From Paragordius varius (Eukaryota > Animalia > Nematomorpha), in contig OZ176056.1 of assembly GCA_964247055.1 (NCBI GenBank), positions 8,246,001 to 8,310,000 of the forward strand: a stretch of DNA of 64,000 bases, in the 5' to 3' direction. Below are positions 61-60,027 of the stretch, in pieces. Each line of letters begins with the position of its first letter. Position 1 is the first letter of the stretch. Made by a program: the position numbers and the translations under genes. Below the pieces are notes generated by a model. The model was not told the DNA's origin. It saw nothing but the letters and a program-made list of their open reading frames with translations, and did not search any database.

Positions 61-3000
61 CTGATGTGGCCTTAATTCGTTTAATTGAATCAAATTGATA
101 ATTAAAAAAATATAAAGACATATACTGATTTTTAAATCGAAATCGTTGTCAATTAGTTTTATTTAAATTTCCTCCAAAAAACATCACAGTTTGTAAACCA
201 TTAATTCAATTGAGAAAATTTTTACCGTTTTTTCTTAGACTTTTGATACGATCTTAAATTTTATATAAATGCCTAATAGACAATATTACCCAATACATTC
301 CGGTCAATGCTACTCAAGGTTGTATTTATGTTTCCTTTTGATTATAAATTTTTAAGTATGTCTATTTACTAAAAAACCAAATTAATGTTGGTTTTAATCT
401 CAATACGCGGTATTAATTCAAATATTTTATTTGCAGATCACAGACAATTGGTAGCGAATTCAACAATGACACACTCAAACAAAGAGCTTAGTAAGTTACT
501 TTGGATAAATTTTATGTGAGAATCAATCTACCATACCAAATCAAATTTAAGTCAAAAATTATTTAAGACTTTGGCCCTACGCTTTTAAAATAATGTTGTG
601 AATTAAGAATAGCAAAAAAATTTCATCCTTGAAAATAATTTGGATATATTTCCTTTCGATACGGTTCAATGCCTAAAATCTATTTTTGCCTTGTAAAGAT
701 AATTAACAAAACCACAATAGTGCTGCATTCATAGGCAATCCGAGCGGTTATTAATTTAGGGTTATATAAATTTTATTATCTATTATCAAATTATATATAC
801 AGTGAGATGTCCTTTTATGCGAAATCCCACAAATTTTATATATGCAAATTAAAATATTCTGTCAACTCAACCATTTTTAATAAATATAAAACGAACATTT
901 TAAAAGCTTTGTATATCACTTTCTAAAAAACCGTACAGTCACAGGCTAAAACTAGATATTTATACATTATATTATCAAAAATATTTTTGAAAAATGCAAA
1001 TCGAAATCAATTATATGCCTGTTTACGTGATAAGTTTCAATTATTCAATCCGAATGACTCTTAATAAATCATGTTTACATTCTTGGCAAAATTTGTAAAA
1101 AATGTTTTGATAATTTGAAAGGAAAAAAAACAGAAAATTAATTTATTCGATCTAAATTGTTAAACTTTATAAATAACGGATATTTTACAACATTAAAACA
1201 GTAAGCAACCACAAAAAACTGTACAATACAGGGATATCTTTATGACGCACTCAAATAAATTTTTACTAAATTAATTGATATTAAATTTTTGACTATTGGA
1301 TATTGTTCCCCTCCTATTATTTATAATTCGATGAAAAAATAATTTAAAATACCTCTTAAAATTAGTAAATGACCTATAAAAAATTCATGCAATAAAAATA
1401 TAAATTATACGGGCGAAACGTAAAAATATACAATTTTGATAAAAAAATATTTTTACGTTTTGTCTCTGCATAATTTCAAATTTTACTGTAAATTATTAAA
1501 TTTTTATTTAATTTTTAGATCAAATCCAAGATTTTTTACCCGATACTATACAGTCTAATGTAGAGTCTAATGTGAGGCAAGGTTGTTTCATATATTAATT
1601 TTTAATATAAAAAAAAATTACTAATTATTTAAAATTAGAACAAATCCAAAAAATAAAAAGTATAAAATATATATGATATATTCTATAAAACATTTTTGAA
1701 AGAGTTATTGATTTATATTGAACACATAAAAATGTAGAGAAATACGGATGGGTAATTTAATTCTTCTGCTTGCAAATTTATACCGTTGTATTCGATTTAT
1801 TTATATTTTTAAAGTCTAAAAACAATTATAATGATATTTTATTTAATAATAGTTTAGTAACGCCTATATAAAATATTAATTTTTTTTCGATTCTTTTTTT
1901 TTGATAAATTTTAAAATTGTGGAATTCCATTACCCTGAAAATTTTATAATTAAAATCAAATACGGAAAAAATATTTTTTATACCATTAAATATATACCAT
2001 CAATTTAAATTTACCCTTAAACAATTTAAATTCAACCTCGAACAATTTAGATTCACCTTTGAACAATTCAAATTCACCCTAAAATAAGTTATATTTTGGG
2101 CTAATATAACTCATCATATTATGAAATATATTTTTACGACATGTTTATTATTTTTTCAGCATTATTTTAATTTTAAACAGAATTTATAATTTACAAATAC
2201 TAAAAATAAAGGTAATTTTTAATCATTGAAAAACGACATAATTTATTTTAGGGTGAATTTAAATTGTTAACTGTAAATTATATTTCATTTATATAACTAA
2301 ATATATATATGTATAAATCTAACATAAAATAATTTATTGAAACAAATATAGAATGATGTCGATGATGTTGAATCATCTGATGGTAAACATATTAATTTTT
2401 ACCATAAATGAGCCTCCTTAATAACTGTTACAAATATATTCTTTGCTAAAATATTTTTTTAATTAAGTGAATTAGTGTTTATGTTTAAAATAAATATTTT
2501 AATATTCAAATCATGATAAAATAGGATCATTTAAGATAACAAAAGTTTTATATGTATGTATTTGTTAATTTTAATGTTCGATAACTAGAAATAATAATTA
2601 ATTTTGTAAACTTGTGTTTTAATAAAGCACAATCTGAAAAATAGAAACATGGTTTGATTTTGATGCCTTTCATGTAGTTTATTTTGTATAGGCTGAAATC
2701 CAAATATATCAGGTGTTCGTATATTCTAAGTTGCTAAGATTATGCTAGACTATAAAATATTTTTTAGTGTAAAATATATTTTTAGATAAATTGATTTATT
2801 ATAGTTTTACAATTTATCAATTATTATTTTATTTAGATTTTACCACCATTCGATTCAAAAGTAATAATTCATATTTGATCCATAATAAAAATGAAATAAA
2901 TCTTAGTTTTTTAGGTAATTTTAGATATAAACAGCATAGTTGCATTTTGAAAATTATGTTACCTTATTACACCACAAAGAATTCATTCACTTTTAACTAT

Positions 3001-3381
3001 AATGAATTTATAATATTTTCACCATATAATTTCAATCAATCTTTTAACAAACGGTAAATTTTTAGACATTAAATCCAGTTTAAAGCAAAGACTACAAAAT
3101 TTAACCAATATAAGTTTATCTAACTATATTAATTAAATTTTTATAAATGATCATTTGAAAATCTTTAAAGTTTGCTCTACCATATTTAACATATAGCTAA
3201 ATTTTAGTATTATTACTGATACTGCGATATTTTTGTATGTCAAGATCTTGAATTACCTCAGAAACGCTTTTTATTAATAATTTATGGTAGTTTAAGTACT
3301 GAAGCTTATATCAGTCGATGTTAGAGCCATTTTTAACAATTCAAATTTTTTATATTATATTTACCAGATAAAGAGGACTGA
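61..3381 (+). CDS. 3' part of a putative micro-exon gene (gene 0), acidic C-terminus; 5' end outside window
   Basis: AG/GT-bounded exons that chain in frame: 61-78, 280-318, 437-490 (ttgcag/gtaagt), 735-746, 1564-1581, 1738-1751, 2352-2382, 3368-3381 (stop). Product: xDVALIHNITQYIPVNATQDHRQLVANSTMTHSNKELSNPSESNVRQEKYGWNDVDDVESSDDKED*. Exons 280-318 and 437-490 are best supported; the smallest are tentative. Confidence 0.5.
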
Positions 3382-4029
3382 AACGAATTCCGAAATTTAT
3401 GATTTATATATATTTATATATTTCTATATTGTGCTTTTATATTAAAATCATGTAATTATTTTATATTTATAGCTAATTTTAATGGAACTGAAACCGATAA
3501 AGACCCCATCGCATGATTGATTATATGGTTCTCGATTTTTGTTTAATATGTAGGAATTATATTCACCATTTAATTTTCTGCAATATAGATTAAAAAGATC
3601 ATCCATTTAATAACCAATTACCTATTCAATATGGGATCAAGGGACATTGATTTTTTTAAAAAACATGGGATTTTTTATATCAATAATTTGATGGAATGAT
3701 TACATAATAAATGAGTTAGTTTTTTTAACTTTTATTGTTTCAGCAATAACTAAAACAACAGTTTGCGCCTACGTTAAAATTAAAAAAAATGGCACATGTA
3801 ATATATTTATAATGTAATAAATTAATTAATTTATCTATAATAGCTTTAAAACTATTTTAGAAAATTAGACAACTTTCTATGTCTTAAGGTCTGTTACATC
3901 ATATACTTTCGCTTTAGTATTTGATAAGATATCTTATAGGTAGTAGACTGCCATTGAATACTCCTTAAAGTATGAAGGATATATAAATATTTCTTGAGAT
4001 GTGCCCTAAGGATGTCTTTGAATTATTTT

Positions 4030-6480: not shown

Positions 6481-8363
6481 CGTTTATACCCGTACTAGTT
6501 TTTCGCCACAATATAAAATGACCATTTTGTTTTGTTTGTAAGATAGATAGATAGAGCTCTTTATTAAATGACACAGATTCAATAAAATAAAAACTTTTTA
6601 TTATAAAGTTAGATATAATTTTCTGTCAGTTTTCTCTTTTTGAAAAATTAAAAAAACCCGTATTATCACGAAAATTTGATTGGGGGAATCAAAAATAATC
6701 TCAGATTCGGATTTGGAACACTGAAGTAAGTCTAAATTTACAATTTTGAGTGGTGGTACTCAAAATAAATTTGTTGACTGGTGCTATCGATTTTAAACAT
6801 ATTTTCATTTTATAGAGTATAATTTACTCTTTCGAATAATTATAACAAATGGGGGGTTGTTGTATATTGTAAAAAAACATATAAGTAAAATTTTGATAAA
6901 GAGATGGCATAAATATACTGTACCATAACAATCTTAAAATGTTATTAATTATTAAAAAATACAAAAACTTGAGTGACAGAAAAATTTGTTGCCTAGTGTA
7001 ATAATTTAGAAGATGTTGGACTTAAAAAAGTTATAATTAATTTTGAGTTAAAACTTATTTTTACAGAATTAGCAGTTTTAAACAGTCCATATCAATGAGC
7101 TCAATTGAGAAGTAATCACTATAATAAAAATATGAATGGTGTTAACAAAAATAATTACAATTAATTAATGATTATATTTGAGAACACTTTTTTACTATAT
7201 ATATTTAGAAATGTAAACTTGTCTGAATTAAATACGAAGAAACATGATTATTATCAAATCAAGACCCTTGAAATTTTTGTTAAAGTAATTCATATGGTAT
7301 TTTAAATAGAAAATTCCAATTTTTTTCAACGTATAGAAGGAAATCCCAAAAACTTCTTTTGAGTTAATCTGCAAAAATATATAGAATACTTTCTAAATTA
7401 GAAAATTTTCATTTATGATAGATAATTAAGATTGGTAATACATCTTTATAATTTATTTAATATTACAAGGAACATTATTGTGTAAAAATATGCATTCTGA
7501 AAATACTGAATTTTATAAATATTTAAGGCCAATTTAAATATTTTTATTAAAATTATCGGTTATTCTAACTATAGCTGTTGGTATTTTATTGGAACTCTCG
7601 TTTAAAAAAATGTTAAGCAATAAACACTTTGAACAAGAAAATTTTAAACATATTAATATGTAAATATCGCCACTGAATAAATCTAGAATATTTTTTTATC
7701 ATATTTACTCTAAATAATATCAGCATTTGCATATTAATCATATTAAATCCTGGCTAAATTAATATAATCTAGAATTTTCTTAACAAATGATAATTCATGT
7801 CTATAAACCAATTTTTACCAATCATTTTGTTACCGATAAATGCCAGCGTAAAAAACAACATAGCTATCAATAATCTCATTTATTAAAATATTGTAATATA
7901 AAAAAATCACAAAATTGTTAATAATCCAAATAATAAGCCCATGATTAATGTTATAAAATTTATAAAAAAGTTGAATTTAAAGTAAGCATGTGGTTAAATG
8001 TGTCTGGCTTTTGCTATCCCTAAATACAAAATAAAAAAAATTATATTTAAATTAAAATTATTCAATGTTTTTTGAAAATGCATTCATAATTTTTTGGAAC
8101 GAATACACTTAAGGAACTGATAAATACATATTTATTATATACACAAAATCTAACGGTAATATCTATAAAAATTATCTTTTATACATACTTAACTCGTATC
8201 AAACGTTTAGTCCAAAATTTTATTTAGTTTATAAATTAGTTGTATGTGAAAATAAATTTATATCATCAAGAAATACATTGCATTGATTTAACGATGGTAG
8301 CAATTTTTAACCATTTGATTTTTTATATAACTTTAATTATAAAATAATCATCAATATTACTTA

Positions 8364-11300
8364 TTAGGAAGGTTGTTGTTGACCTTGTTCAAGACCTAAT
8401 TTTCAAAAATATTTTTAATAAGTTAAATATATATATATAATATATAGTGAAAAAAAAGTTATCTAGAAATATATATAAATATATATTCGTCTTTCAATCG
8501 GATTGTTCTTTTACATTGCTAGCAATTTATATATTATTAATAAAAAGAGCAATATTAACCCTGGGTATAAAATATTAAGACCTATGAAACTACGTTACAT
8601 AGTGGTAAAGAAATAATTCAAAAAAACCAAATATTCGCTATATTCTAAGGCAAAATGGCTGAATTGTCATATTTTATACAATAAATGCTTGTAATTATGT
8701 AAGTTTCCAAGTTAATAAAGCAAATTGTCAAATCAGGGAAATTATTTTAAAGAGTATAAAATTTGATAAATATATATATGGGCTTAAATTGTGAATAATA
8801 AATAATTAAACTTGAGAATTATATTGCACATGGTTTTACTGACTTAGCCCTTTTGCAAAAACATATGATTAACCCGTTCGGTATTTAAGATGGAATTTTA
8901 AATTTAAATTTCAAATTTAATCGAACGGTAATTATCAAATGTCGAGAACTAGCCCTATAATACATATAATTATACTAGGCATAACCGCCTTAAACCAATA
9001 TTTAAAATTCTTTGAAATACTGTTTTCATATGATCTGATTTTTGCATTTTAGCACTTTGTTATTTCGAACGTTATTGAAATATGCCTTTTAATTTATTTT
9101 TTAGTATACTCGATTCACAAATATACACCATTCCCGATTTTGGATATAATAGATAGCGGAATTTTTAAAACTGGCTACTTAATATAAGTCAGTTTAAATA
9201 TTATTATGCTCGTTTTGTGAGTTGTTTATATATATTTCTCTATCAAATGTGATATTAATTTCGTTTTAAACATATAATCTTGTATGAAAATTATTTTTAT
9301 GTACCATCACTTTAAGAGTGTTTTTGAACACTTCAAGTAGCTTCTTAACATTTTAGTTGGTCCTTGAAATTACATTATGGTCCTTTACATTTTATTGTTT
9401 TAACTTTTATAAATCATATCGTGTATAATTTAATGATTTTATTATTTTAATCTATTTTCTTTATTTAACATAAACTTTTGAATCAATATCATTTAAAATC
9501 ATTCAGAAACCGTATATCTTCTTTCCTTTCTTAGAAAATTTTTTTATAAACATATAACGCGTAAATTAAAAATATATTTCTGGGTTATTAATTAATTTAT
9601 TTTAAAAATTATAAGGTAATTAATTTGTTACATTGGGAAAAATTAGTTTTAAACAAATGTTTTTGAAGAAAAAAATAAATTTTTCAAATATATAATAAAA
9701 AAAGTAAATTGTGTTAAAAACAATAATACTTAAATAGTAATTAAAAATTTAAGAACAACTTCAAGTGTTTACCTTGATTTAAAAATCTACCTTATGTTCA
9801 CTTAACAACTTGAAGTGTTCAAGGACACTCTTGAAGTGCAAATGGTTTACATATCGTTTTATGCAATGTTTTTTATGATACGAATAGTGGTTTAATACAG
9901 CTATTATATTTATGATTATACTCTGAATGTTATAAAAAAGGCAACAAATTTTTTTTTATATCCTTTAATGCTTTGCATTCAGTTTAAGGTAAATGATTAC
10001 TCACTTTAAGTCATAAAGTTTTTTTTGGCTTATTTAACGAGTTTTAGCATTATCGGTTAATAAACATTTTATCACTTTTGTGTTCGGCAAATAAATATTT
10101 TTGTATCCTATTCTCAACATGAATAATCCTTGAAAATAATAAATTGGAAATTCAAAATTTTATGAAAATATAGGAGTAATACAAATTTTTTAAGACATAC
10201 CCGTTTGTCCTTCATCCGTTGTTCTTTCCCCAGGTAATGCGTTTCCTTCATCCTCAGCTAAAGGTGTAATACATTTTAATCAGGGGTGTTCACAAAATTT
10301 TTCTGAAGCCCGCGAGAAAACAAATACAAAAGTTTAAATAATTAGGAAAAATGATTTTAAACATTTTTTTTGAATAATCTTTTCAAATTTTGGCCATGAA
10401 CTAGTAAAATTACTTCATTATGCCTAAAATCTAAAAAAATATTTGTTTAATCCCAAAAATTTTGCGATTGCGGCCCGGGAATCCAATTATGTTGGACACC
10501 CTTGATATAATACTTTGTTGAAATAATAAATAAATTGCACATATTAATTATAGAATCGATATAAAGTTAAAACTAAAACCATTTACAATTCAAATTTACC
10601 CTTAAACAATTTATATTACCCTTGAAGAATTCGATGTCACCCTCAAACAATTCAAATTTACCCTCAAATATATTATATGTTTTTCAAGATTAAAAATTAC
10701 CTATATTTTTATTTATTTTTGTAAAATAAAATTTTTAAATTAAAATAATGAAAATATAAAAACTATGCCATAAAGATAGGTTTTATATTAACAATGAGTT
10801 AAAATGGTTCGAAAACACATAATTTATTTTAGGGTGAATTTGAATCGTTTAGGTTTAAATTAAATTTTTTCAAGAGTAAATTTGAACTGCAAATGGTATA
10901 TGTTTTACCTTGAGTGAAAACTGATGTTAGGTCATCCAAGACTTGAGTCTATATTTTATATAACATATTAATGTATTGTATAAAAAGGTAATAAATTTTG
11001 ATGTTTACATTTCCGAATATTTCTAAATAAATTAATAAATTTGGATATAGGTATTATATTATAAATAAATAAAAATATTAAATAAGTGTACGTGTCTTTT
11101 CCTCCTCAGTCATACCTAAAATATAGATATTTGTTTTAAGACAAAAATACAAAGTAAAATTAAATGATAAAAATTTAAAATAGATTATGAAATCAAAGAA
11201 AGTTTTGATCAATCCATAGTAAAATAATTAGAGTTGCAAAGTATGTTTTTTATAGAATTAAAAATATTACGATGAGGTTGATTTTCTAGATCGGCGGGAT

Positions 11301-14300
11301 TTTGGGCCAAAGTTGAATTTTGTTCTACTACAGAGATAAAATAAAAAGTTTTTAAAAATGGTTTCAAATTTTAATACTCAGTTAAGACTTTATTATCTTT
11401 TGGAGTGGCTTTGTACACAGAGCGTTTAATAACGCAATATTTATTAAAGTATTTATTTTTTTGTGTTAAATATAACAATATGTATTGTTGAGCCTTAAAT
11501 CTATAAAAATCCTCATCTTAAACCTTTTCGCCGTTTCATCATTAGAATTTCCTAAATAGCTAATACATCAGGCAAATGAATGTATATACTAAATAAATTC
11601 AGTTGATTTTCTTTTTCACCATTCATATAATCAGATGTGTGTTTGAAGCAAGATTTGGAGCTTTTTCGATTTCGGACCCTTGAAGTCAGCACAGAAAACT
11701 GCAAATATGAGGTTTTACTAACATAGGACAACAATGTTGACAAAAGTTTTAACTAAATAACTTTCAAAAAAGCTCTGGTATATCAAACAACCCCAATATT
11801 TTATGGCGGATAAAAAAACTAGAAATATCCTGAAATTTTAAAATGTAATCGGCGGAATAAAGTGAAAAGGTAATTAACCACGTGTTAATTCATACCGTCA
11901 ATGTCCTCATTCTCACCAGGTGTGTCATTGATTTCATCATCCCGGGCTAATGATAAGATTTAAAAATTTTCTTTCAGTAAATATAAAATTAAATGATATA
12001 TGGCTTGCTGGTTAAGCTAAACTTTTTTCTAGATGAGGTGTAAAAAAGGTTTTTAAATGCCAATGTTTACGCAATTTTTTATCGTTTGTATAAAACAAAT
12101 ATTCCTTTTTCAAAATAAATCATATACAACCGTTATTGTAAGTTATATTGTTTTTGAGTTTGACAAACAAGGAATAAAGATGAAAATTGGTAACTAATCA
12201 TGTTTGTTTTTGTGAATTCTTTATGACATATTATATAGAAAGAATTAAGTTAGATAATATAAAAAAAATTAGTTTGGTGCTCTTTGTATTTGTATAATTT
12301 GAATTTAATACTAGTATAAAAAGTATAAAAAATTTTTATGATAGCGTTTTAAAAGTTTATTCCAAGCAAAGCATAACCAACATTTATGTAACTGATATGA
12401 AACTTACGTTGATCAACGATTATTGTGAGATCACTTTCTTTTTCTGTCTAGAATTATAGAGTTTGCATTTTGTTAGAAGAATATGAAACAAGCAATCAAT
12501 TGTTATAAAAAGCTATATTACCCCTCCATGCGCCCCTAATCATCAAATTAAATATATATAATAAAAATTCAAATAATACGGACAAAATTTAAAATATTAT
12601 TTATTATTTTTTTAAAACCACAACCATAATTTTTAAACCTTATGCTCCCATATAAACTATTTAATTATACATTTGTAAAAATTATATTTACATCTTATTT
12701 TCAATTTTAAATCATTCATATCATAAAGGTTTAAAATGTATAGGTTGTCTTAAAAAAATACATCTTTTATACGTTTTATCCGTACAATTTAAATTTTTAC
12801 TGTATGTTTTTTCAAATATTTGTTGAAAAAAATATGGAAAATGAAAAATAATACGTATAGAATCTGTTAAACTGGGACCTAAGGAAAATATAATCATTTT
12901 ATACAATATAAATATAATTTAAATATCTGATATTGCTATTTTTAATGCAAAAAAAAATTGAAAACATAATAACAGTCAAAAAATGCAATTACGATTAGGA
13001 TATGGGAAAGCTAGGGTACTATTGTCCATTGAATTAACTATAGATATATGGTACATTTTTTAAAATATTAGATCATGTTGATTTTCATTTACGATTGAAT
13101 AAATTATACCAGATTTCGCTGCAACGTTTTCCGAAGTAGTTTGACCATTGAAATTGTCGGAACCTTATAATGTATAAAAAAAGTAGAGTCTGACAAAAAA
13201 TATAATAATATTTTCCATTCAGAATATATATATATCATCAGGTTATTTTTGTAGACACATATTTTACTAAACATAGGATTCAGGGCTACAAAAAGCATTA
13301 TAATGGCCGCATGAAGTGGCGGTTTGAGTATTACTAAGAAAGCTTTTTGAAAATAATAATTTTATTATCTCAAACTTAATTTTAATTTATAGTATTTGTA
13401 CCCCAGAGCGTTTTACAACGAATAAGCATTACTGAGCCTTTTAGGCAAAGAAGCAATAATATTATAAAAAAGGTAAAATAAAAATCCACGTCTCAAACTT
13501 TTTGATCGCCATTTTCTTAGAATTTAACACTTAAGAAAACCTCAGTTATTCATGAGGAATTAACCTGGATCAATGCAACAATGTGGAATAAATTTAACCA
13601 TTGCAAAATTTCGCATCCGCCTAACATTGACCGAAATGTAAAAAAAATGGTTCACAAAAAATTGTTAATAAATATTTTATGGATATACCAGAGAATAAAA
13701 GTTTTATTAACATATGTGCATTAGTTAAATATAAAAATAATGCAAAATCAATCATTTTTGGTAGGTTTATTGTAATTTAATTAAATCAACTTCAACTTTC
13801 GTTAGAATAAAGGTACGATAATTTACAAAAATGAATAAAAATGGCGACAAGTTATTAGATATGAATTGTTGAATGCTAATAATTATTAAAAAAACATTTC
13901 AAATTGGACCCGGCCCTTTCAATAGTTTTCTCATATATACCAGTTAAAAAAAGTTCTGGGGTCACTAGTTTCCCCAATTCAAATCAAAGTGTTAAACCTC
14001 TAATACAACCAGGAAATAGATGTATATCCGGTTAAAAAGATAAATAATAAAGCTTCAAGAACTATTTTAAATCAATTTATTCGAGTTTTTGGGGCTAGCC
14101 CATTTTCGGCCTCTTAAAGTCAGAAAACTGGGAACACCATAAGGCTAATTTTTTAATCTGATAGATAACTTTCAACCAAAATAACTAACTTTCTAAAATC
14201 ACTAATTTACTAAAACTAAAACTTTGGGGTAAAAAATTTCCTTAAATGCGATTGGCTGAACATATAAAAAATAAATTAAGCACGTGTTTTTACCGTCAAT

Positions 14301-17300
14301 GTTATCATTCTCTCCAGGTGTGTCATTGATTCCATCATCCCTGGCTAATGATAAGATTTAAGAATTTTCTTTCAGTAAATATAAAATCAAATGATATAAT
14401 GCTTGATGGTTAAGCTAAACTTTTATAGATGATGGTGTAATAAAATATTTATGTGCCACACGCAAAATCATATACGTTTTTCCGTTTTATAAAAATATTC
14501 CTTTTTCTAAAGAAACCATATTTTGACAACAACCTTAAGTGTAATATATTTTATCGTTTTTGAGGTTGAAAAATAAGGAATTGAGATAAAAATTGGTAAC
14601 TAATCATGTTTGTTTTTGTGAATTCGTTATGAAAAGTTATATAGAAAGAATTAAGTTAGATAATATAAAAAAATTTAGTTTGGTGTGCTTTGTATTTATA
14701 TAATTTGATCGAAAAATTAGTAAAATAAAGTCTAAAAATCAGCGTTTGTGTATATTTTAAGCAAAGCATAACCAACATTTATGTAACTGATATGAAACTT
14801 ACCTTGATCAACGATTATTGTATTACGACTCATAGCTTCTACCTAGAATTATAGAGTGTACATTTTGTTAGAAAAATAGTAAACAAGCAATCAATTGCTA
14901 TAAAAAGCTATATTACCCCTCCATGCGTTTCTAAGCAATAAATTAAATATATAATAATTGGAATTATACGGACAAAATGTAAAAATATAAAGATGATATT
15001 TCAAACGACAACCAGATTTTTTGAACCATTTATTTCCCATAAAAATTATTTAATTATAATTGTAAATTTATAATTATTTGTTTTGCAATTACACAACTTT
15101 ATTTCATAATTTGCAATTTTAAATTATTAATATTAACGATTCAAATTGAGATATCTAAATACCCCATACTAAAGTTAGGATTTTTTAAAAACTACTGAAG
15201 GGAACAGTCCCAATTTAAGTTTATTTTTCTATCCTGCTAAAAATTATATAAATATGCCAAAATATCTAGATAAGATTTTGTTTAGAAAACTTCCATGTCA
15301 AACTACTTCGACGTTATTTTTATTTTACAAAATTTTTGCAAAATATCGCCTTCATTTAATTTTAAGGGTAAAATTAAAGCTTATTTTTGATTTAAATTAC
15401 ATCTAACATTGATAAAAATAGAAACGGTTTATTGTATATTTTTCAATTTTACCATTGCACACATGCGTTGACTAAATTTTTACCTTTTGGTTTTAACTTA
15501 AAATAGTGTTATCCAGTATTTTTGAAATTTAATTAAATTTCGGTTTATTAATGTTATATAAATGCAAAATTTCGCCATAGTTTTGATTCCTTCCATATTT
15601 TTAAAGAATTTAATTTTAAACAGGCCGGGAGTATTTAACTGCCACAATTTGAATCGAAGGACTAAAATGAATGTGCTGTATCCAAGTGTTAAAAAAATAT
15701 GGTTTAAAGTGTGTGGTTTGTCAGTAAAAAAATACGTAAATTTTACGTTTTGTCCGTACAATTATAATTTTGCATGTTTTTATAAATATTTGTTGAAAAA
15801 ATGTTGAAAAATAATTACGTATGGTATTTGTTAGACTGGGACGATCTAAAAATTTAATTATTTTATACACCATAAAAATAATAATGCGAAAAAATTCAAA
15901 AAAAATATATAACAATCAAAAAATGCAATTACTAGCAGCATATGGGTAAGTTAAGGTCGAATTGTTTATCGGATTAACATCCAACTGTTTTTCTATATAG
16001 ATATGTGGTACATTTTTTAAAATATTTGATTGGATTGATCAAAATTTACTATGATATAATTTAAAATACCCGTAGTTTCCTTTGTAACATTTTCTTTAGT
16101 ATTTTCATCAAAATCGTGAGGATCTTATCACATATAAAAAATTAATATTTATTAGTAAGGTCTGACTGGTGACACTAAAATTAAATATTAAAACAAATAT
16201 TTTTTTTTACTAAAAGACTAACACCTAGAATTAATATATTTGACTTTTTTTGAAATGTATCTCATTGTTTGAAATTGCAAGTAAGAAATAGAGATGTATA
16301 TTATAGAAACTTAAATGATACATTTGTAATTAATTTATATGAGACAAATTAAATCTTAAAATTATAGATATTTATCAAATAAAACGTATAATTTTAACTT
16401 TTACTGTGTGACCATTTTGAGGCCCTTTTTAAAAACTGATCAAATTAGAATTTTTAAACAAGATTGGGTTAACAGTTAATCCAACCCATATTTTTACAAA
16501 TTCAATTTTTAATTAGAAATCATGAAAAATTATATTGTAATCATATTTATATAAAGGGAATATGTATAAATTTGTAATACCTTGATAGAAAATAGATGTC
16601 TTGTTATTTATCCATTGTTGCTAGTAGAAAATGAGAAAGTTAATACATTACTTATTAGCTCAATAAATTACACGTTTTGTAAATATTTAAAACTATAAAT
16701 TTGTTTTTCTTTACACCTCAAAATATTGTTAAAAATGGAAAGAAAATTGGTTAAAATATTGTTTATAATAATCAGTACATTTAATATATATATATATATA
16801 TAGTATATTTAATGTAACAAACCCCTCCAAATGGAACTAAAAAATTATATATGTAAATTGATATTATTCTAAGTGATATTATATTCTACAACATTTTTTA
16901 TAATAATTTAGGCCTAATTCTTATAGATTGATTTTGTCCTTTTAAAACAAGGGTGCTCAACACCCGGCACGCCTGCTCTATGCGGTAAAAAACTATGTTA
17001 CTCCGTAAAAAAATGATAAAATTGGCAATTTTTACAAAATACCATAATTTGCACATGTATGATACAAAAAAATTTCAATTAATTGAAACTTTATATAATA
17101 ACTTTTGAAAAAGTGTTTTCCAATGAAACTATCCCAAATTGGTAAAATAAAAACTGGTTTTATAGTAGTCTTAAAACATTTTTTATTGCTTTATGTTTGA
17201 AATTATAAACAAATTATTATAGGCTAATTGATATAATGCTTCCCGCCAGATTATGTAAGCACAAAATGACGCCTGCAGCAAAGCTATTTGTATTGAATAC

Positions 17301-29600: not shown

Positions 29601-32600
29601 TTAATCAATATAATCTATATTTTTGAGTATCGAAAATTATGTTGTAAATCGTAATCTATTATAATTAATATCATAAATTTGTGGTAAGGAATTGTAAATA
29701 AGTATGGATGTTTTAAAAAATGTTTGTTAGTTTGTCAATCTAATTTAAAAATAATAATATTCTGACCGTATCCTAGTAAAAATTATATTTAGATATAATA
29801 TATTCAAAATTTTTTTAACCGTAAACGGGCAAAAAATTGTATGCAAAAACATAATACCTTTCTGAACCTGACTCGTTAGATCTAAAATATTAAAATATAT
29901 TTTTAATAATGTGCAACTTTAGAATAAGAATTTTTTTATGGATAGAGAAACTAACACTAGCTTGCTTAAAGAATTTTTCAAATTGGGGTACATTGCACAC
30001 ATGAAAATATTAACATTTAACAAATCTTTCCAGTTAATGTTTAAATAAATTATCATTTAAAAATATTATTTTAAAAAAAGTGCTGAACAAATGAACAGAA
30101 GTATTCTTAATTGCTTTTATATCAACAAGCTTAGACATTTATAAAGTATAGCGTCCAAAATTAAAATTATAGATTCTATATAATAAAATTAAATGTGTAT
30201 TTTATAAATTTTGAAAAATTTATGAGGTTAAAATGTGTTGAATAACAACATTAGTTTTGTATAACATAATTTTTCCCAATCTCTAAATTTTTTAAACATG
30301 TGACTACCACTTTCATACACAAACATAAATTAATTATATTTTTAATTTAATAAAAAATATTTTGCATTCTGGACGCTTTAATTCTTAAATGTCGAACTTT
30401 ATTGAAACTGCCTATATGTTATTATTATAGAATCAAACAGTTAGCCAATTTTATGCAATAAATATTTTCTCAAAATTTTTAAAACACATTAGAATGATTT
30501 AATCAATAATTATTTTGCTTAGATTAACCGTAACTCTTATCGTATGTAAGTTAGTTTCTCTATTTTAGTACCGTAAAAATTGAATTTACGGACAAAACGT
30601 AAAAATATAAAAAACATTTTTTTTTCTAAAAGACAACCATACTTTTTCAAAAACATTTACTTATCCTATTGAAAGCATTTAAAAACAATCGTGGAGTATG
30701 TGATTGTGTTAGCAATATACATCTCTATTTCATGCTTTTTGTTAAAACAATGAGTTAAATTTAAGAATCAAGATTTTAAAAGTATGGTTGGTTTAAAAAA
30801 ACGAGTTTTCTTATTTTTACGTTTTGTGTGTATATAATTCTATTTTTAATAATATAAAATAAAAGATTTTTTATTTGATCCTATTTAAGTATATATTAAA
30901 TAATACTTTGTATGTATTGAGCATCGTTTTTGATACCGTAGGATCCTATAGAAAATATTATTAATAATATATAGGGAAAACGTTCAATTTAATGAATCCA
31001 AGTAAAAATTTGGAAAAGCAATCTACTATTAAAGTTAGATAATTTTTCTAAATTATATTTTAAAGTTTGTAATTCTTTTGTGATTATTATTTATTTTTGA
31101 TGGGTGTTGGATCTAACCAATCCACATTAATTAGCCCTTGTTCAATTACCAGTAAAAAAAGCTTAAAATCACAAATTTAATTTATTATCTAAATAAATGA
31201 ATTTAATGTAAACTATGTGAAATGGAATTAAAATAGTAGTATAAATTATTAAACGGATTAAGATAAAATGGTCGTTAAGATAAAAATTATAATAAATAAA
31301 TACCATTCAAGAGCAGGTTTGTGGATTCTATAAATATATATATATATATATAATCATAAAATATTTATATTATATAATATTTAAATTTTCAAAATACATA
31401 AATTTTGGCATCATCAGTATTGTCTTTACAAGATAAGTTAAATAATTTATGATAAATGAATATTTTAAAACTTTTGCATATATCCTATAATGATCTCTTT
31501 ATGTGCGACAATATAATGTTTCACAATCAAAACTAATGGACTTAAAGTTTGTTAATATTTTGGTAATGAATAAAATAAGTTAAATCCATTCTTCTGAAAG
31601 ACAAAAGCCATCTTATTTTTTTAAAATTTCATGCAAAACTGCAAATTTTTCGATTTTATTTGTGACTGTCGCATACCTTTTTGATTATAATTTTAGCTTA
31701 TCATACCTTTACGATGTAAGCTTTATGTAACAATAAAATTCAGTTATGATGACCAAACCTTATTCTCTAAATAGTATTTTTAAAGCATAATTTTCATATA
31801 GAACCATATAATAAATTTAACTAAAAGTTATAACCTTATAATGGAATTGCATTACAGTTCTGACGCAAGTCAGAGAGCGATTTCAGTGTGGACAATGACA
31901 ATAAAATTTTTAACGACAGATATTTTATAATTAATTTTTTCAGGATTTAAAATTATACAAATAAACGTAATAATATAAAGATAATTTTTTTGAGGAACAC
32001 CATACTTTTACAAACCTTAATATATCCTATTAAAAGCATTTAATAACAATCGTAAAATATATCATTGATTGGGCTACCAATATACATCTCTATTTTATAC
32101 TTTCTTATTTAAAATAATGAGTTACATTTAATAAAATCAGGATTTAAAAAGTATGGTGTCTTTTAGAAATAAACATTTGACTTTATATTTTTACGTTTCG
32201 TCCGTATAAATTTATTTTAACTCTATACAAACAAATATGAGGGATTTTAGAAATTTTTCTGGTAGCTATTCAATAATGAATGCTTTATTGTAATATGATT
32301 AAGTAATTTGATTATTTAATTTTTTTAAAGCCTATGTTTCTGATATGACTAGGTCTTATAAAATAAATACTTTTCCAATCATGATTTTTATTGATATTTT
32401 ATTTGTAATAGAAATTTGCGGATACTTGCTGATATGAAACTCCTGTATACTAAAATTTTATTTTTAAAATATTCTTTTGCTTTTAATAAAAATGAGAATT
32501 TGAACATATTTTATACATATTTAATAAATAAATTAGTATTTCAATAAAAAGGTATAAAAATTCCTGCCTAAAAAATGCGTTAATTTACAATATAAATTCA

Positions 32601-33763
32601 AATCATGACAAACGTTTTAACATTAAAAATATGTTTTTTTTCTTTCAAAAATAGGCATAATTTTGTAAATCTTTTACATAAACTTTTATTTTCGAAATGT
32701 ATATTTCAGTTCATATTAAATTTCTATTACTTTATCTGAAAAAATAAGTCATATTTATAAATCCAAGTGATTAATTTGTTTGTGTTCAAAAAATATTTGT
32801 GTGTATATTTTTAATGTTTACAAAAATTTACATTTAATAATGTAAACAAGGCTAAAAAAATTACATTAACAACAATATTTTTATGATGTATATTATAAGG
32901 TAGATTTTACATTGTACATAATTTAATCACTCCAAATAAACATGTAAAAACAAAATTTTAATAAATACAATACGTGGCCTTTTTTTATTATAGCCAAATT
33001 ATATAAATAAATTAGTTAATAGTTAAAATTAAAGTTCCAAAACGATTTATAATCTAAATTTAAAATAAAAACGTATTATATCGGACCTAAATTCATATGC
33101 AATCTATGCTTTTAGGGGGCATTCATAATAACATATATTTTTAGTAAATATAATTTTGAATTTGAGCTTATACAAGATTTTTTCTGGATTTAGTTGCTTT
33201 AAATGATGGCATACAACATGATATTTTAAATATAAAAATAAATTATTTTAAATATACCTATTTAATATTATGACAGCGTTTTGTTTTTTGGAATCCTACG
33301 TTATATATGGATCAATAAGGAGCTGTCAAAAACAAAGTTATGTGCTGTGGAATTAATGTTAACATTTAATTTTTAAAAACTTATTTTAATCAATAAAATT
33401 TAAATCGTTTAATTATTTTCAAAGTCGTATTAATATACTTTAGTTTTTATCAAACCTATATGGTTATCACAGAACATTTTTTCGTCATAATTACTTTAAC
33501 TTATGTTTAACATTGAAAACTAATGCCAAAATTTAAAATATACATTATTGTAAAATTTTTAAACATATAAATTATTAACCGGATTAAACGACTTAAACAC
33601 CGTTCTTGACAAAAAAAATTGTTTGCTAACCTTTAAATTCCTTTGTCTCATCGAGAGGAAAGTCGTATTTTGGACAAACCATAGTCAAGTTACTGCTTTT
33701 ATCAGAGGCTAAAACATTGGCACCAACGAGAACAGCCAATAGAAGATATATGTAGGATATCAT
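8364..33763 (-). CDS. Micro-exon gene 1: predicted secreted protein, about 312 aa, 26 exons, acidic repetitive tail
   Basis: Exons in transcript order: 33631-33763 (MISYIYLLLAVLVGANVLA signal-like), 32426-32449, 31304-31327, 31150-31161, 30937-30945, 29858-29881, 27281-27295, 24668-24721, 24591-24611, 23898-23909, 23708-23723, 22882-22916, 21901-21918, 21585-21626, 21357-21413, 19880-19885, 17495-17521, 16823-16836, 16581-16620, 16070-16123, 14294-14344, 13110-13163, 11896-11946, 11271-11327, 10201-10257, 8364-8395 (TAA). All introns are GT-AG and the sum is 939 nt, open throughout. C-terminus ...ARDDEINDTPGENEDIDVEQNSTLAQNPADLENQPHPEDEGNALPGERTTDEGQTGLEQGQQQPS*. Confidence 0.75.
9300..9850. 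mobile_element. MITE with TACCAT termini and CTTGAACACTTCAAGT modules
   Basis: Left end TACCATCACTTTAAGAGTGTTTTTGAACACTTCAAGT, right end ACTTGAAGTGTTCAAGGACACTCTTGAAGTGCAAATGG; a second copy starts at about 63815. Confidence 0.7.
10281..10504. mobile_element. hAT-like MITE
   Basis: Ends CAGGGGTGTTC / GGACACCCTTG with GCCCG subterminal motifs; no clear TSD. Similar ends at 16948-17305 and about 23100-23390. Confidence 0.6.
11400..16220 (-). repeat. Tandem duplication of a two-exon module of gene 1 including introns
   Basis: About 11400-13270 aligns by eye with about 13390-16220 once two MITEs are removed. Exons 11896-11946 and 14294-14344 are near-identical; 13110-13163 and 16070-16123 are both 54 nt with TAAG acceptors. 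Confidence 0.88.
13528..13991. mobile_element. TTAA-flanked (piggyBac-like) MITE family E
   Basis: TTAA|CACTT...AAGTG|TTAA. Removing it restores alignment with the paralogous intron at about 11540. Related copies at about 15135-15510 and 53945-54492 (GGGGTACTTGGATACCCC motif). Confidence 0.7.
17615..19500 (+). mobile_element. Decayed RTE-clade (BovB-like) LINE, 5'-truncated, antisense within a gene 1 intron
   Basis: Broken RT motifs in order: WISEKSLETAEKRK, NKVMGLDNIP, ENYQKIALISHA, MCFID, VRQG, GVKIIGKTINDLRFADDTTLIAES (about 18770-18830), ESWTLRK, LTYFGHV. Ends in a short (ACCA)n tail. Many stops and frameshifts. Confidence 0.9.
20443..20677. mobile_element. Palindromic MITE with TATACCATTTT termini and about 20-bp CAAATGCAACATTTT modules
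   Basis: TATACCATTTTCAATCAAAAGCAACAC...GTGTTACTTTTGACTTAAAATGGTATA; a more decayed copy lies at about 20103-20297. Confidence 0.7.
27679..28898. mobile_element. 1.2-kb almost fully palindromic non-autonomous TIR element in a (TA)n tract
   Basis: Ends (c)ACTGTGTG...CACACAGTG with TA flanks. Arms match by inspection from the ends (TTTTGCCCGATTTCGAT, GACGACCTAGT) to the centre (GTGGAATATCAACCAACAATCC at about 28265 and 28350). Confidence 0.82.
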
Positions 33764-37704: not shown

Positions 37705-37730
37705 ATATACAGTGAACAAACGTGTATTTT
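36796..37730. repeat. Inverted duplication (about 0.93 kb palindrome) built from Gypsy pol end, PPT and LTR
   Basis: 37203-37312 is the near-perfect reverse complement of 37460-37570, and looser symmetry extends to 36796/37730. The right arm reads pol end, PPT AGAAGGGGGTAG, then a TG...CA LTR of about 144 bp (37529-37672). The spacer matches the reverse complement of 40900-41050. Confidence 0.85.
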
Positions 37731-37744
37731 TGATATAATAATGA

Positions 37745-48100: not shown

Positions 48101-51088
48101 TATACTAATAGAAAAATCTTTCAGGATTATCATGGTGCTTTTGCCTTTGGTCCTACGAATAATTTAAGAAAATTATTTACATTTGTGGTATATTTTTAAG
48201 TTTGGTCCATTTAATATTTTATGAGATTTTTATATTTAAATGGCCCTGGAGTATAAAACCCAAAAGGTTGTGCTATTATAAAAGGATTAGTATAATACGA
48301 AACATATTAAACTATTCAATTAATCCGATTAACTCTGTTTAAATTAATGCTGTTTTGTAAAAAATTCATATTTTTTTACTGACCTTTTTATACTAATGAT
48401 TTTTATATCAGAAAAACAGGATTTTCTGAATAGGGAAATACGGCAGTTTGGGCTTAATGTTTAATTCAATAAAAAATAAATTTTGTGCATAGCCCGAGAA
48501 TTTATAATCATAATACAATAATTAAAGATAATTTTTTGCAGATGGTCAAATTCACTTAATAATTATAAGAAGCATTAAATAACAATATACTTTCGATATA
48601 TTGACGCATTTCTAGGAAAATATTAGATTAAACAAAAAGTTTTACTTGAAATCTTTCCTGCGCACAATAATAAAATAATGTATTTGATTATCAAACAGAC
48701 AATATGAAAAACACAAAATATCCTGTTTAAATTTAGTCGTATTGTGATATAATCAATGAATTTAACAATGTTTATTTTAAGATATCAATATGATTGAAAA
48801 TTTCCCTGTTAACTGACTAATCCATTTGACCTTGCCATTAATTATAATCGCACATCATTGTTAACTTTTTTTTAACTTTCATATATGAGAAATTGTTTTT
48901 TAACTATCATATCTTACATATTTTGTCAAATTGGTTAAATATGCGTTTTAATCAAATCTTTATTTAATCTGTTATGTTGTAATGCCACCATAAAATTTTT
49001 AGGCGATCAGCTTTTTTTCAAGAACCAAATTGCTATGATTAATTGGTTTTTATCAATAAACTACTATATTTTTGATATTATTGTGAGTAACTAATAAGCA
49101 AATATTATGGTTTACTTTAAATAAAAAGCCAGTTTATTATAATTTGACCTGATATTTTAAGTGTTTTATATTTGTTTAATACATTTTGACCCAAATTTAA
49201 ATGAGAAATGCCGTCTGGCCGGAGAATTTTATTTAAAATGTAGCCAGCATAGGAGCTATTCCTTTTGAAATTGGGAAATTATTTTTATGAATCAATTATC
49301 ATATTTTTTTATTTTAATGATAAATTTAATTAAAAATTATTTAGCATAATTTAATTTTAATTAATCTCTAACAGGGTTACGAAGCACAATTGAGGCTAAA
49401 TTCCGACAATCGGGCTCATTATGAGTATTCAAATAAAAACCTATAAACCGTATCCAAAGTATAGAGTGAAAATAGTATCAAACAATAACCTGATTGTATA
49501 ATTCCTGCCGCATATATAAAAAAAATATTTTTGACAAAAACTATAAATTTTAAAAATGCAAATGTAATTTTAAGTAAACGAAATATACTTTCAATCATGG
49601 ATGAGGATGTATCTAATCAACAAAATTTAGTTTAACAAAATTAATTCTAAAAACTTTTAATTATATTTTATTTATATTTTAGAAAAATATATTTTATAGA
49701 GATTACCTTGTGATTCTATTACTGTTTATTATATTTTATTTTAATAAAATATCATGGGAATACTTGCTGAAAAGTCGTCACTAACTGATATTTATTTATT
49801 ATATAAAAAAATATTTTCAAATGTGCCTCTTACTGCCGAGCATACGTTCCCCCACTAATAATTTACAAAAAATTAAGATTAAATTTTGTGTTTTTTTACC
49901 TGTAATTAACCCACGAGTTTCTAAATTTATACGATAAAAATTATTTTTGGTTCATAAATTATTTTATAAAATTTTAATAGCGCAATACGATTAAAAATTT
50001 AAGATAACAGGAAATATTTGTCTCCCATTAATACCTAATTAAATAATAGGTTCATCACAATAAAAATAGCTAATTTTTTTCCATTTTATTTAATAATTTT
50101 TTTCTACGAATATACCCTTGGTCTATTTTGGGGCAGAGTGTGATAAATATAGGCAATTCAGCAAAGAGCCTTAATATTAAATTTTAAGCCAACAATATTG
50201 TCATTTTCTGTATTTGTTGCAGTAACAATATACGTTTCTTATTTTTACTCTAATCAACTTTATATATACCATTTACAATTCAATTTCACCCTTAAACAAT
50301 TCAAATTCACCCTCAAATGAAATATATGTTTTTTAAGATTAAAAAACACCTATATTTTATATATGTTTATGAAAATAAAAATTTTGTTTTGAATTAAAAT
50401 AATACTGAAAAAATAATAAACTATACCATAATATTTCATATTAATAATGAGTTATATTAGTTCAAAAACGCATGATTAATTTTTAGGGTGAATTTGAATT
50501 GTCCAAAGGTGAATTTGAATTGTTCAAGGGTGAATTTGAATTGTTCAAGGGTGAATCTGAATTGTTCAAGGGTAAATTTGAATTGTTCAAGGGTGAATTT
50601 GAATTGTTCAAGGGTGAATTTGAATTGTTCAAGGGTGAATTTGAATTGTTCAAGGGTGAATTTGAACTGTAAATGGTATATATAGTTATAAGTAGCACAT
50701 ATTTGGAGAATATATATAGGTTAGACTTTAAAAAGAATAAATTAATTTTGAGCAAAAATTACTATCAATGACCATTAATTTTGGTTGTCGAAACAAATCA
50801 ATGTCGGCATAAAATTAAAATACCTAATTATTAATTTCTTAAAACTAAAATATTTCTAATTAGTAGCCAAATCCAATATACTACAAATATACCAACGCTT
50901 CATATACAAATTAATGTAAAATATAGCGCATAAATGTCATTTACAAATGAAAATTTTAGGAATGGTCAATTAACATTGTCATTAATCTAATCACTAAAAA
51001 TTTTCGTTAGTGATTCCCAAATGCTTTAGTCGACTTAAATAAGGAAACGGGCTTACGGTAAAATTGCAAACAATTTTCCAGAAAACAT
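45168..51088 (-). CDS. Micro-exon gene 2: predicted secreted protein, about 184 aa, 21 exons
   Basis: Exons: 51057-51088 (ATG, gtaagc donor), 50116-50169, 49900-49920, 49834-49854, 49764-49780, 49707-49721, 49490-49504, 49381-49440, 49191-49214, 48591-48611, 48016-48036, 47583-47636, 47503-47523, 47166-47186, 47079-47102, 46565-46585, 46477-46497, 46310-46324, 46230-46256, 45980-46003, 45168-45193 (TGA); 555 nt open. MFSGKLFAILPLFAELPIFITLCPKIDQG...LKTNVAGRINYFRVGGWSLEADVANFNEGLKSTSRLLNSASAESIDMSQQIDEGEFPAEDASETSSLMLSDIEEEGSEFSDTD*. The first exon is the least certain. Confidence 0.7.
50263..50682. mobile_element. Foldback-type MITE family A with arms made of 21-bp tandem modules
   Basis: Termini TATACCATTTACAATT...TGTAAATGGTATA; right arm has about 9 copies of AAGGGTGAATTTGAATTGTTC. 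Other copies at about 1991-2283, 10578-10900, 28901-29199, 42297-42575 and 59405-59615, with the same internal segment in either orientation. Confidence 0.85.
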
Positions 51089-57730: not shown

Positions 57731-57761
<31 letters not shown>

Positions 57762-58619: not shown

Positions 58620-58650
<31 letters not shown>

Positions 58651-60027
58651 AAAAACTGGAAATAATTTTATTTATATATTAATTTTTTTTCCTAGAAATA
58701 AAATTTTTACATAATATTATGAATGAAATAGATGTAGAAATGTTTGTTTTCACTAAATAACCAATAAAATTACACAAGTTGTTTTAATTACAATCAATAA
58801 TCAATTACGGTTTTCCTCAAAATCGGAACTGAAAATACCGAAATCTAATTTTTAGTTTTTCGTTCCTTAAATTTAATTTTTTAACAAAACAATATTTTTT
58901 GAAACTTGATGCTAATCTATTGTAGACACAAAATTTTTTTCAACATATTTTTTGAAAAGATAATTAATAAGGTGGAATTAGAATCGTTTCTTTGATTTAT
59001 AGCAGGTCTTAATTAATTTAATTTGTGTTATTAAATATTTTCTTATTTTATGTAGTTTTTAGTTTTTAAATTATTTTCATTAAAAACACCATTGTTAGGG
59101 TATTCGAAATTTTGTAAATGAAATTATTTTAAGCCTGCCACAATAATTTTAATAAAATTACGTAAATAAAGTTTTTCAAAAAATTGAAATATTTTTAAAT
59201 CAAAATGGGCCCAAAATTTTGGGCAAAGACTTAAAACGGGATTTAAAGAACTAGGAGAATCACTGATTTATTCAGTGAATGGATAATGGTTTAAGAATGT
59301 CATTACTAATTATAATATTGTGTGGAAAAATATATATATTTATATATATACCAGGTCTGTCATCTATATATCCATCTATAAACAATATTTATTAAAGTAT
59401 TATTGATACCATTTAACCCTTGAACATAATTTATTCACCCTAATGATGTATTGTGTTGTTGAACAAATCCATAACAAACAATCATTGATATTAAATATTA
59501 ATTTATGGCACATAGTTTATTACTTTTTCTGTTTATGTTAATTTTCGAAATTTTACTTTTTAATTGGGGGAATTTTAAATGTTTAAAGGTAATTTTGAAG
59601 TGTACAAGGGTGAATTTTTTGGGCAAAATTATCCCGAAAACGTGTGGACCCATTCAAATTCAAAAACTTTATTTATTTAACTATTTTGCCAAATATAATC
59701 GGGTTTTTTTGAATTTGAGTCCGTATTTTGCCATTATCCCCCAAAAAACTTTTTAAAGCTAATTTGCCAAAGTTATGAAACTATAAGAAGAATTTATTAT
59801 AGTTATTTTGGATGATTCCTCTATAAAATTGATTTTGGCTTAAATATGAATCTAAGAGTGGACTGGTTTTAAAAACAATTATATAATAATAAAAAAATAA
59901 AGTCAAAAAATAAGAATGTTTTAAACTGTTAATTATTCATTGGATAAATAAAATTTGATGGATTTATAAATAAATTAATATAATTACCTGCAAAGATGCA
60001 CAATGTAATCCAAACCAATAGTTTCAT
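51492..60027 (-). CDS. Micro-exon gene 3: predicted secreted protein, about 215-218 aa
   Basis: Exons: 59988-60027 (MKLLVWITLCIFA), 59352-59375, 58809-58844, 58556-58579, 57780-57818, 57660-57734, 57252-57338, 55340-55360, 54976-54993, 54505-54582, 53672-53743, 53575-53598, 53475-53498, 52799-52825, 52654-52686, then either 51623-51643 plus 51492-51505 (stop) or 51859-51884 (stop). Every internal exon is 3n nt and phase 1-1. Optional candidates at 59782-59820 and 57144-57155. Confidence 0.72.
55470..55712. mobile_element. Tc1/mariner-type MITE family B
   Basis: TIR CAGTAAAAATTAAAATTATACGGACAAAACGTAAAAATATAAA with TA flanks. Further copies or fragments at about 1395-1490, 12570-12805, 14960, 15640-15780, 30575-30850, 31955-32225, 43300, 46673-46930 and 47820-47930. 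Confidence 0.8.
55780..56790 (+). pseudogene. Degenerate mariner transposase inside a gene 3 intron
   Basis: KWVPHNL (WVPHEL motif, about 56140) and LGWEILSYPLNSSNLALIHF (decayed GWEVLPHPPYSPDLAPSDY, about 56540-56600); stops and frameshifts; TIRs not clearly resolved. Confidence 0.8.

Follow-up and report, generated by a model that had tools for sequence, protein, structure and literature searches.

A putative cluster of micro-exon genes in the horsehair worm Paragordius varius

In micro-exon genes (MEGs), a signal peptide is followed by numerous tiny symmetric exons; these genes are apparently restricted to platyhelminths (PMC4350168). The Schistosoma MEGs were described by Berriman (2009) and DeMarco (2010), as relayed in PMC4350168 and PMC10526429; in S. 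mansoni, their exons measure 6-81 bp, mostly 15 bp, and their introns reach 5 kb (PMC10526429). In tapeworms, MEG clusters have formed by tandem duplication, and ten MEGs are located on chromosome 6 of Hymenolepis (PMC7653826). The operational rule proposed by Olson et al. (2020, PMC7653826) calls for at least seven exons, at least half of them shorter than 70 nucleotides (nt) and divisible by 3, with a run of at least four. The locus described here comes from the nematomorph Paragordius varius and occupies most of a 64,000-nt stretch of contig OZ176056.1 (assembly GCA_964247055.1, positions 8,246,001 to 8,310,000 of the forward strand), which was analyzed at its full length and is referred to below as the window. 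Judging from the DNA, we read this window, with a probability of about 0.8, as a cluster of real protein-coding genes with MEG-type architecture: the minus strand carries C1, C2 and B/A in tandem, and the plus strand the convergent D.

Anatomy of the gene models

Each gene of the cluster would start with a leader-encoding exon, continue with a dozen or more very short exons (9-75 nt), mostly of a length divisible by three (3n) and set between phase-1 introns, and terminate with a short exon carrying the stop codon; the products would be secreted. The curated set comprises 57 exons in five models (C1, C2, B, A and D; Table 1), read as three to five genes. Exons have a median length of 24 nt, and 41 of the 50 internal exons are 3n. 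The nine others are all compensated: in four places, a 14-nt exon takes the phase from 1 to 0 and the next exon, of 40 or 31 nt, brings it back to 1, and the remaining one, in C2, is 17 nt long and comes after a phase-2 start. The introns of the models are 45 to 2303 nt long (median 379). GT and AG are intact at all 52 splice junctions; 47 of the 52 donors have A at +3, 40 of the 52 acceptors have T at -3, and G is the last exon base in 32 of 52 cases against a background of 12%. The joined coding sequence, of about 2 kb, runs through the five models without any in-frame stop or frameshift; in four of the models, the final exon supplies the stop codon.

An earlier note, made from the sequence of this stretch, had counted about 70 exons; the exon class itself holds up as real, and the number that can be supported is about 57. 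The same note proposed four genes, three in tandem on the minus strand and one convergent on the plus strand, a layout that is one of several readings, with the count lying between three and five according to where the C1/C2 and B/A borders are drawn. The end points it had placed at a hydrophobic ATG exon (60027-59988), an ATG at 51088 and stop-bearing last exons near 8364 and 45168 are recovered in the models, as are its hydrophobic first exons (leader-like exons in C1, C2 and B) and its acidic tails (acidic products).

C1, C2 and A fall under the operational MEG definition of Olson et al. 2020 (PMC7653826), in agreement with the micro-exon gene architecture first suggested for the stretch: they count 13, 15 and 19 exons, respectively, and the partial models B and D count 4 and 6, below the minimum of seven. 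Exons both shorter than 70 nt and 3n make up 10 of 13 in C1, 12 of 15 in C2, 12 of 19 in A, 3 of 4 in B and 4 of 6 in D; the longest run of micro-exons is 8 in C1, 9 in C2 and 5 in A, and both B and D reach 3. In the original description of MEGs, most of the coding region lies in symmetric exons of at most 36 nt. The share of coding sequence in exons of this size is 0.85 in C2, 0.56 in C1, 0.25 in A, 0.22 in B and 0.18 in D; this stricter majority is clear in C2 alone, borderline in C1 and lacking in A, B and D. As for the signal peptide of schistosome-type MEGs, hydrophobic, signal-peptide-like first exons are seen in C1 (60027), C2 (51088) and B (33763), open reading frames (ORFs) of this kind being frequent by chance; no N-terminus was found for A and D.

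C1 has only 3n, phase 1-1 exons internally and can be read without interruption to a stop. This model is supported blind by splice-site matrices trained on gene A, described below. Its last exon is weak, with 10 coding nt, and the middle of its product contains a 14-residue stretch rich in Gly, Ala, Val and Leu that could be a membrane segment. C2 is read in phase 2 through exons 1-4, and phase 1 is reached with the 17-nt exon; its second exon has a single open phase, the one imposed by the first. The product of C2 is a string of seven-residue acidic modules terminated by an acidic tail and TGA, with AATAAA about 15 nt further on. Second in-frame splice sites, a donor at 53726 or 53672 (exon of 18 or 72 nt) and an acceptor at 49780 or 49784 (17 or 21 nt), are possible candidates for alternative splice choices. 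C1 and C2 form one gene or two: the last exon of C1 is weak and, at 49.8-49.9 kb, three exons can be read in either phase, so that C1 might extend into C2.

The first exon of B has 44 open codons from its ATG and ends on a phase-1 donor. It encodes a 19-residue hydrophobic leader ending with VLA before SDK, a textbook small-residue site (VLA before S), and sits in a 121-nt island of 39% GC. No terminal exon was identified for B, and no leader-bearing first exon of A was found at 16.9-19.7 kb. B may therefore continue into A, the one being without a last exon and the other without a leader exon, and B and A would be one gene or two. The product of A displays 8 NxS/T motifs, no cysteine, and 47 aspartate and glutamate residues against 15 lysine and arginine. 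D is partial; its 5' end was not found in the window and may lie outside, and its product is acidic with 4 NxS/T motifs. D resembles A in two respects: both combine a 14-nt exon (phase 1 to 0) and a 3n+1 exon behind it (phase 0 to 1), a rare arrangement, and both have a downstream exon that opens with an NFNG motif. Paralogy of A and D based on protein alignment was not retained, the E-value of 0.001 having been obtained in a tiny search space and the alignment not being exon-collinear, and their likeness is kept as a structural resemblance only. To complete this inventory, a leader-like ORF at 7819-7879 on the minus strand (20 hydrophobic residues, GTAAAA donor in phase 1) was set aside as a chance occurrence, with no exon chain behind it.

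All five products are acidic, with isoelectric points (pI) of 4.05-5.0, contain at most one cysteine, are hydrophilic after the leader and harbor up to 8 NxS/T motifs (in A). No recognizable domain was found in them, as the earlier note had already reported. The 44 amino acids (aa) of B exon 1 have no match with E <=0.001 among 1.84 billion representative proteins (phmmer) and belong to no Pfam family. No relatedness among the five products is detectable, save for the weak, structurally suggestive A-D link, and the leaders are unrelated to one another. The 54-, 45- and 27-nt exons of A and D show no Gly-X-Y periodicity, so they are not collagen-like by this measure. The composition of these products suggests small, cysteine-poor, probably disordered and N-glycosylated acidic proteins, either secreted or exposed at the surface.

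The exon class against control DNA

To the eye, the minus strand displays short GC-richer patches between TAG or CAG and donors of the GTAAGT, GTATGT or GTAATA type. A filter naive to the locus, fixed before model training, selected segments whose interior GC was 0.34 or more, whose flanks were AT-rich, and which ran from a [TCA]AG acceptor to a GT[AG]N[GTA] donor with one frame open. On the minus strand, it returns 120 non-overlapping candidates, 58 of which are 3n, and 49 of these 58 are open in phase 1. The 3n fraction is 27 of 108 on the plus strand (15 open in phase 1), 30-35 of about 120 in reversed DNA (17-18 open in phase 1) and 26 of 98 in block shuffles (16 open in phase 1). Cross-validation leads to the same picture: splice-site matrices trained only on gene A exons (10-16 kb) and applied to 42-60.1 kb single out 22 strong minus-strand candidates, of which 15 are 3n (14 of these with phase 1 open), as compared to 3n fractions of 3/13 on the plus strand, 6/19 and 10/21 in reversed DNA and 3.7/10.9 in shuffles. 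With matrices derived from A and C together, 13 of the 17 minus-strand candidates at 19.5-37 kb, a segment devoid of training exons, are 3n.

The blind 3n candidates of 42-60.1 kb exhibit a codon periodicity in the phase-1 frame (chi-square 34, p 5e-6) that is absent from the controls, reversed DNA included, with G at a frequency of 0.30-0.32 at codon position 1 and 0.13 elsewhere. The observation that the exons are mostly 3n and phase 1 is borne out by the filter, by cross-validation and by blind periodicity. For the curated joined coding sequence, the periodicity chi-square amounts to 150, compared with 16.9 +/- 6.9 (maximum 44.8) in 300 exon-wise shuffles forced open in the same frame, and G at codon position 1 reaches 0.335 compared with 0.215 +/- 0.013 in these shuffles.

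These results bear on the possibility that the models are chance chains, in which AG and GT around slightly GC-richer patches of AT-rich DNA have been strung into open, phase-consistent series. Such stringing is readily obtained: when the window is shuffled or reversed, a permissive phase-consistent chain builder still assembles open chains of 70-92 exons, and chance alone often produces hydrophobic ATG exons and early stops. Chain length is no evidence, because shuffled and reversed DNA gives equally long chains, and a check that takes long shuffled chains as a refutation would wrongly "refute" a real locus, since chain length does not discriminate. The earlier note had proposed this very check: the shuffled controls do equal the locus in chain length, and do not do so in score, 3n excess or periodicity, which alone separate the real locus from the controls. 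Under a strict penalty, dynamic programming finds 39 exons with a score of 181 in the real window, and at most 11 exons with a score of at most 50 in the controls. Chains obtained with a low penalty were discarded, as shuffled DNA gave equally long ones and neighboring genes and transposable-element fragments were merged. A chance origin is most improbable given that the 3n and phase-1 excess is confined to the minus strand, that codon periodicity goes far beyond that of shuffles, that paralogous exons keep their length class and frame, and that splice features never selected for, such as the G at the last exon base, are present. The pattern at the coordinates of Table 1 is confirmed to exceed chance.

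Several points nevertheless weigh against a MEG-type gene cluster. Hydrophobic segments combining an ATG with a donor are common by chance, with about 55 in the window, so a "signal-peptide exon" alone is weak evidence here. The coding sequence of A, B and D lies mostly in exons longer than 36 nt (mostly 40-60 nt). Support is weak for the exons at 17-30 kb (periodicity p 0.04-0.09). The reverse cross-validation, trained on C and tested on A, failed at low power, the matrices being overfitted to fifteen training sites and giving low scores to most exons of A. The seed exons were in part selected visually, with preference for 3n lengths and acidic translations, and this may inflate the periodicity of the curated set and not that of the blind one. 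Finally, the sequencing runs that matched the queries are DNA-like; five RNA-labelled runs under the same species label, all very small, contain 0.00 of the sampled words for both queries, and no RNA contig was placed on 12620-15036 (run X9). The stage of these very small runs is not stated and exons shorter than 31 nt are not indexable; this absence from RNA is an absence of data, weak evidence, and not evidence of silence.

Duplication within the locus and use of its exons

The sequence shows that the genes expanded through tandem duplications that kept the frame, both of single exons and of a cassette of six exons. In gene A, the direct repeats of the cassette are 2395-2957 nt apart, and the frame is kept between copies because their exon lengths differ by +15 and +3 nt. 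A third 14+40 pair (16823-16836 and 16581-16620) has the same lengths, the same phases and the same ends, TGGAGGG and ATCAAG, and the compensating pair is preserved in each of its three occurrences in A. No further cassette copies were detected in the window by nucleotide search. In C1, the two 24-nt exons of the tandem pair are identical at 21 of 24 positions and keep their TGTTAG acceptor and GTA donor, while the flanking intron aligns no better than AT-rich background; such a contrast would be anticipated under constraint on the exon and not on the intron. Within the 40-nt exon, the cassette copies disagree at 14 of 40 positions, compared with 14% in introns (p 8e-4). Diversifying selection on this exon was considered and dropped, as some 40-column intron windows are equally divergent owing to indels. 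A run-based contrast of exons and introns (X5, X6, X14, carrying other organism labels) proved unusable, these runs combining low-depth, near-identical DNA with very deep coverage of intronic repeats, and an apparent cluster of differences in the 40-nt exon in other-organism runs was a cross-mapped paralogous copy.

Might these genes be decaying pseudogenes, or relics of a once-active family that has lost its expression? Their exons are found in no RNA run, their introns are packed with repeats and with insertions of long interspersed nuclear elements (LINE), long-terminal-repeat (LTR) elements and miniature inverted-repeat transposable elements (MITE), A has no recognizable first exon and B no last one. 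Decay of this sort is unlikely in view of the uninterrupted coding sequence of the five models, the intact GT and AG at every junction, and the 24-nt exon that was conserved after duplication as its introns decayed.

With nearly all internal exons symmetric, each could be skipped or duplicated in frame, and the locus could therefore make protein variants. Such variants would most plausibly serve a parasite-host or surface-coat role, in a life stage absent from the available RNA data. A bolder proposal is that horsehair worms have independently evolved a genome-wide MEG system, whose clusters would be expressed in the stage inside the insect host, with rapid duplication of cassettes and combinatorial skipping of exons varying secreted or surface proteins against host immunity or for host manipulation; this we consider rather doubtful. 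A more sober account accepts the genes as real and sees the short symmetric exons as a by-product of exon duplication in structural secreted glycoproteins, such as those of a surface coat, an egg string or a cyst-wall matrix, each gene making one product without diversification by splicing. This account, which we hold to be plausible if short of probable, draws on the in-frame duplication of exons and cassettes being the sole mechanism visible in the DNA, on products that are repetitive, acidic and rich in glycosylation motifs, as matrix or coat proteins are, and on the exons of gene A, mostly 40-60 nt long, with only 25% of its coding sequence in exons of at most 36 nt. No test result goes against it, as it differs from a variant-generating MEG-type cluster only in the use made of the architecture; the candidate splice choices at 53672/53726 and 49780/49784 hint otherwise.

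Genomic setting and relation to known systems

The GC content of the window is 22-26% throughout, and no ORF longer than 130 aa and no tRNA were found in it; for comparison, the published genome of Gordionus montsenyensis has 26.9% GC and 64% repeat content. Upstream of C1 lie exons of a tetraspanin-like gene, of ordinary size, unlike those of the neighboring micro-exon genes; one of them, encoding 39 aa (63627-63743), matches positions 178-210 of Pfam Tetraspanin with an E-value of 0.004, under the curated cut-off. A degraded LTR-retrotransposon pol separates genes B and C, and a LINE reverse-transcriptase fragment is either intronic or located between models B and A. Foldback (MITE-like) elements are also present; their arms are tandem arrays of a 21-nt unit (GGGTGAATTTGAATTGTTCAA) and are up to 95% complementary. 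A short intronic element with the core GTACGGACAAAACGTAAAAATATAAAG is among the most abundant repeats of the genome, as its word depth in DNA run X5 is about 9,800 at 14969-15036 against 3-5 in adjoining unique sequence.

Table 1. Predicted gene models, duplicated exons and other features of the window, with coordinates counted from its first nucleotide
Feature	Position	Strand	Description
Gene model C1	52394..60027	-	13 exons; product 138 aa, pI 4.3; exon sizes 40, 24, 36, 75, 21, 18, 69, 18 (alternative donor: 72), 24, 24, 33, 24, 13 nt
C1 exons 1-7	59988-60027, 59352-59375, 58809-58844, 57660-57734, 55340-55360, 54976-54993, 54505-54573	-	
C1 exons 8-13	53726-53743 (alternative 53672-53743), 53575-53598, 53475-53498, 52654-52686, 52554-52577, 52394-52406	-	
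C1 first exon	59988..60027	-	ATG and 13-residue hydrophobic leader, then GTAATT donor in phase 1
Gene model C2	45168..51088	-	15 exons; product 117 aa, pI 4.05; exon sizes 32, 54, 21, 21, 17, 9, 21, 21, 24, 21, 21, 15, 27, 24, 26 nt; modal 21
C2 exons 1-8	51057-51088, 50116-50169, 49900-49920, 49834-49854, 49764-49780, 49707-49715, 48016-48036, 47503-47523	-	
C2 exons 9-15	47079-47102, 46565-46585, 46477-46497, 46310-46324, 46230-46256, 45980-46003, 45168-45193	-	
C2 exons 1+2	50116..51088	-	32 + 54 nt; joint 28-residue hydrophobic N-terminus
Gene model B, 5' part	29858..33763	-	133-nt first exon and three tentative 3n exons (24, 39, 24 nt)
B exons	33631-33763, 31304-31327, 30907-30945, 29858-29881	-	
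Gene model A	8364..16836	-	19 exons; 241 aa read, pI 4.07; stop TAA; exon sizes 14, 40, 54, 60, 27, 14, 40, 51, 54, 45, 24, 14, 40, 51, 54, 24, 33, 57, 32 nt
A exons 1-10	16823-16836, 16581-16620, 16070-16123, 15933-15992, 15819-15845, 14917-14930, 14803-14842, 14294-14344, 13110-13163, 12993-13037	-	
A exons 11-19	12855-12878, 12522-12535, 12408-12447, 11896-11946, 11271-11324, 11092-11115, 10909-10941, 10201-10257, 8364-8395	-	last exon with stop TAA
Gene model D, partial	280..3517	+	convergent with A; 6 exons of 39, 54, 63, 14, 31, 45 nt; 80 aa read
D exons	280-318, 437-490, 1519-1581, 1738-1751, 2352-2382, 3473-3517	+	last exon with stop TGA
Tandem exon cassette of gene A	11896..16836	-	54, 45/60, 24/27, 14, 40, 51 nt; two full copies and a partial third
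Tandem 24-nt exon pair of C1	53475..53598	-	PEAGPSN / PNAGPSN; 100-nt period
Tetraspanin-like gene exons	62000-63750	-	
Degraded LTR-retrotransposon pol	37200-41350	+	RT_RNaseH E 7e-9, integrase zinc domain E 5e-4; stop-broken
LINE reverse-transcriptase fragment	17600-19250	+	motif RFADDTTLIAE; Pfam RVT_1 only E 0.18
Foldback elements	1986-2300, 10571-10914, 28899-29212, 42273-42574, 50240-50694, 59544-59648		copy at 50.5 kb with nine units
Short intronic element	12543-12603, 14933-14993, 32148-32218, 43305-43365, 46657-46717, 55454-55514		

MEGs have so far been treated as a peculiarity of parasitic flatworms, in which they are numerous, secreted at the host interface and fast-evolving. If the cluster is what we propose, a second, unrelated origin in another parasite phylum would represent a convergent architecture, and the link between symmetric micro-exons, secretion and parasitism would become testable by comparison. 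Such genes escape standard gene predictors and RNA-seq aligners, so that the gene counts published for nematomorphs (about 10,000 genes) and the reported "gene loss" may omit a whole class of secreted proteins, which would be candidates for immune evasion or for the manipulation of host behavior.

Compared to the Schistosoma MEGs, the models exhibit the same succession of a first exon, here with a putative leader, and 10-20 very short, mostly 3n exons separated by much longer introns. Their products are likewise small, predicted to be secreted, poorly conserved and of low complexity, and in both cases ORF finding overlooks the genes and gene predictors struggle with them. Sequence similarity was not detected (B exon 1 being the part searched), and the organism belongs to Nematomorpha (Ecdysozoa) and not to Platyhelminthes. 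The modal exon is 21-24 nt here instead of 15 nt, and the products are strongly acidic, whereas the S. mansoni MEG proteins are described as hydrophobic and "sticky", with basic C-termini (PMC10526429). Alternative splicing, gland expression and secretion have been demonstrated in schistosomes, whereas the present locus is known from DNA alone. The tapeworm MEGs of Hymenolepis microstoma and Echinococcus multilocularis (PMC7653826) offer a second parallel in their tandem clustering and in the operational rule that also covers C1, C2 and A. Members of the tapeworm clusters have a conserved leader motif in common, whereas the leaders described here are mutually unrelated; the present cluster is therefore not one recently expanded family, with the possible exception of A and D.

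The phase 1-1 modules exchanged by exon shuffling among extracellular proteins (cf. PMC3632108) are a third point of comparison, as they are also symmetric phase-1 exons that can be duplicated or skipped in frame. These modules usually encode folded domains of 40-130 residues, whereas the exons of this locus encode disordered segments of 3-25 residues with no domain. The literature search found no paper linking micro-exon genes with Nematomorpha or hairworms, and this, together with the reported restriction of MEGs to platyhelminths (PMC4350168), is consistent with the independent instance outside flatworms that the earlier note had considered possible. The locus is MEG-like in its architecture, and it probably does not belong to the flatworm families by descent: it would be a convergent variant, resembling the MEGs of schistosomes and tapeworms without being homologous to them.

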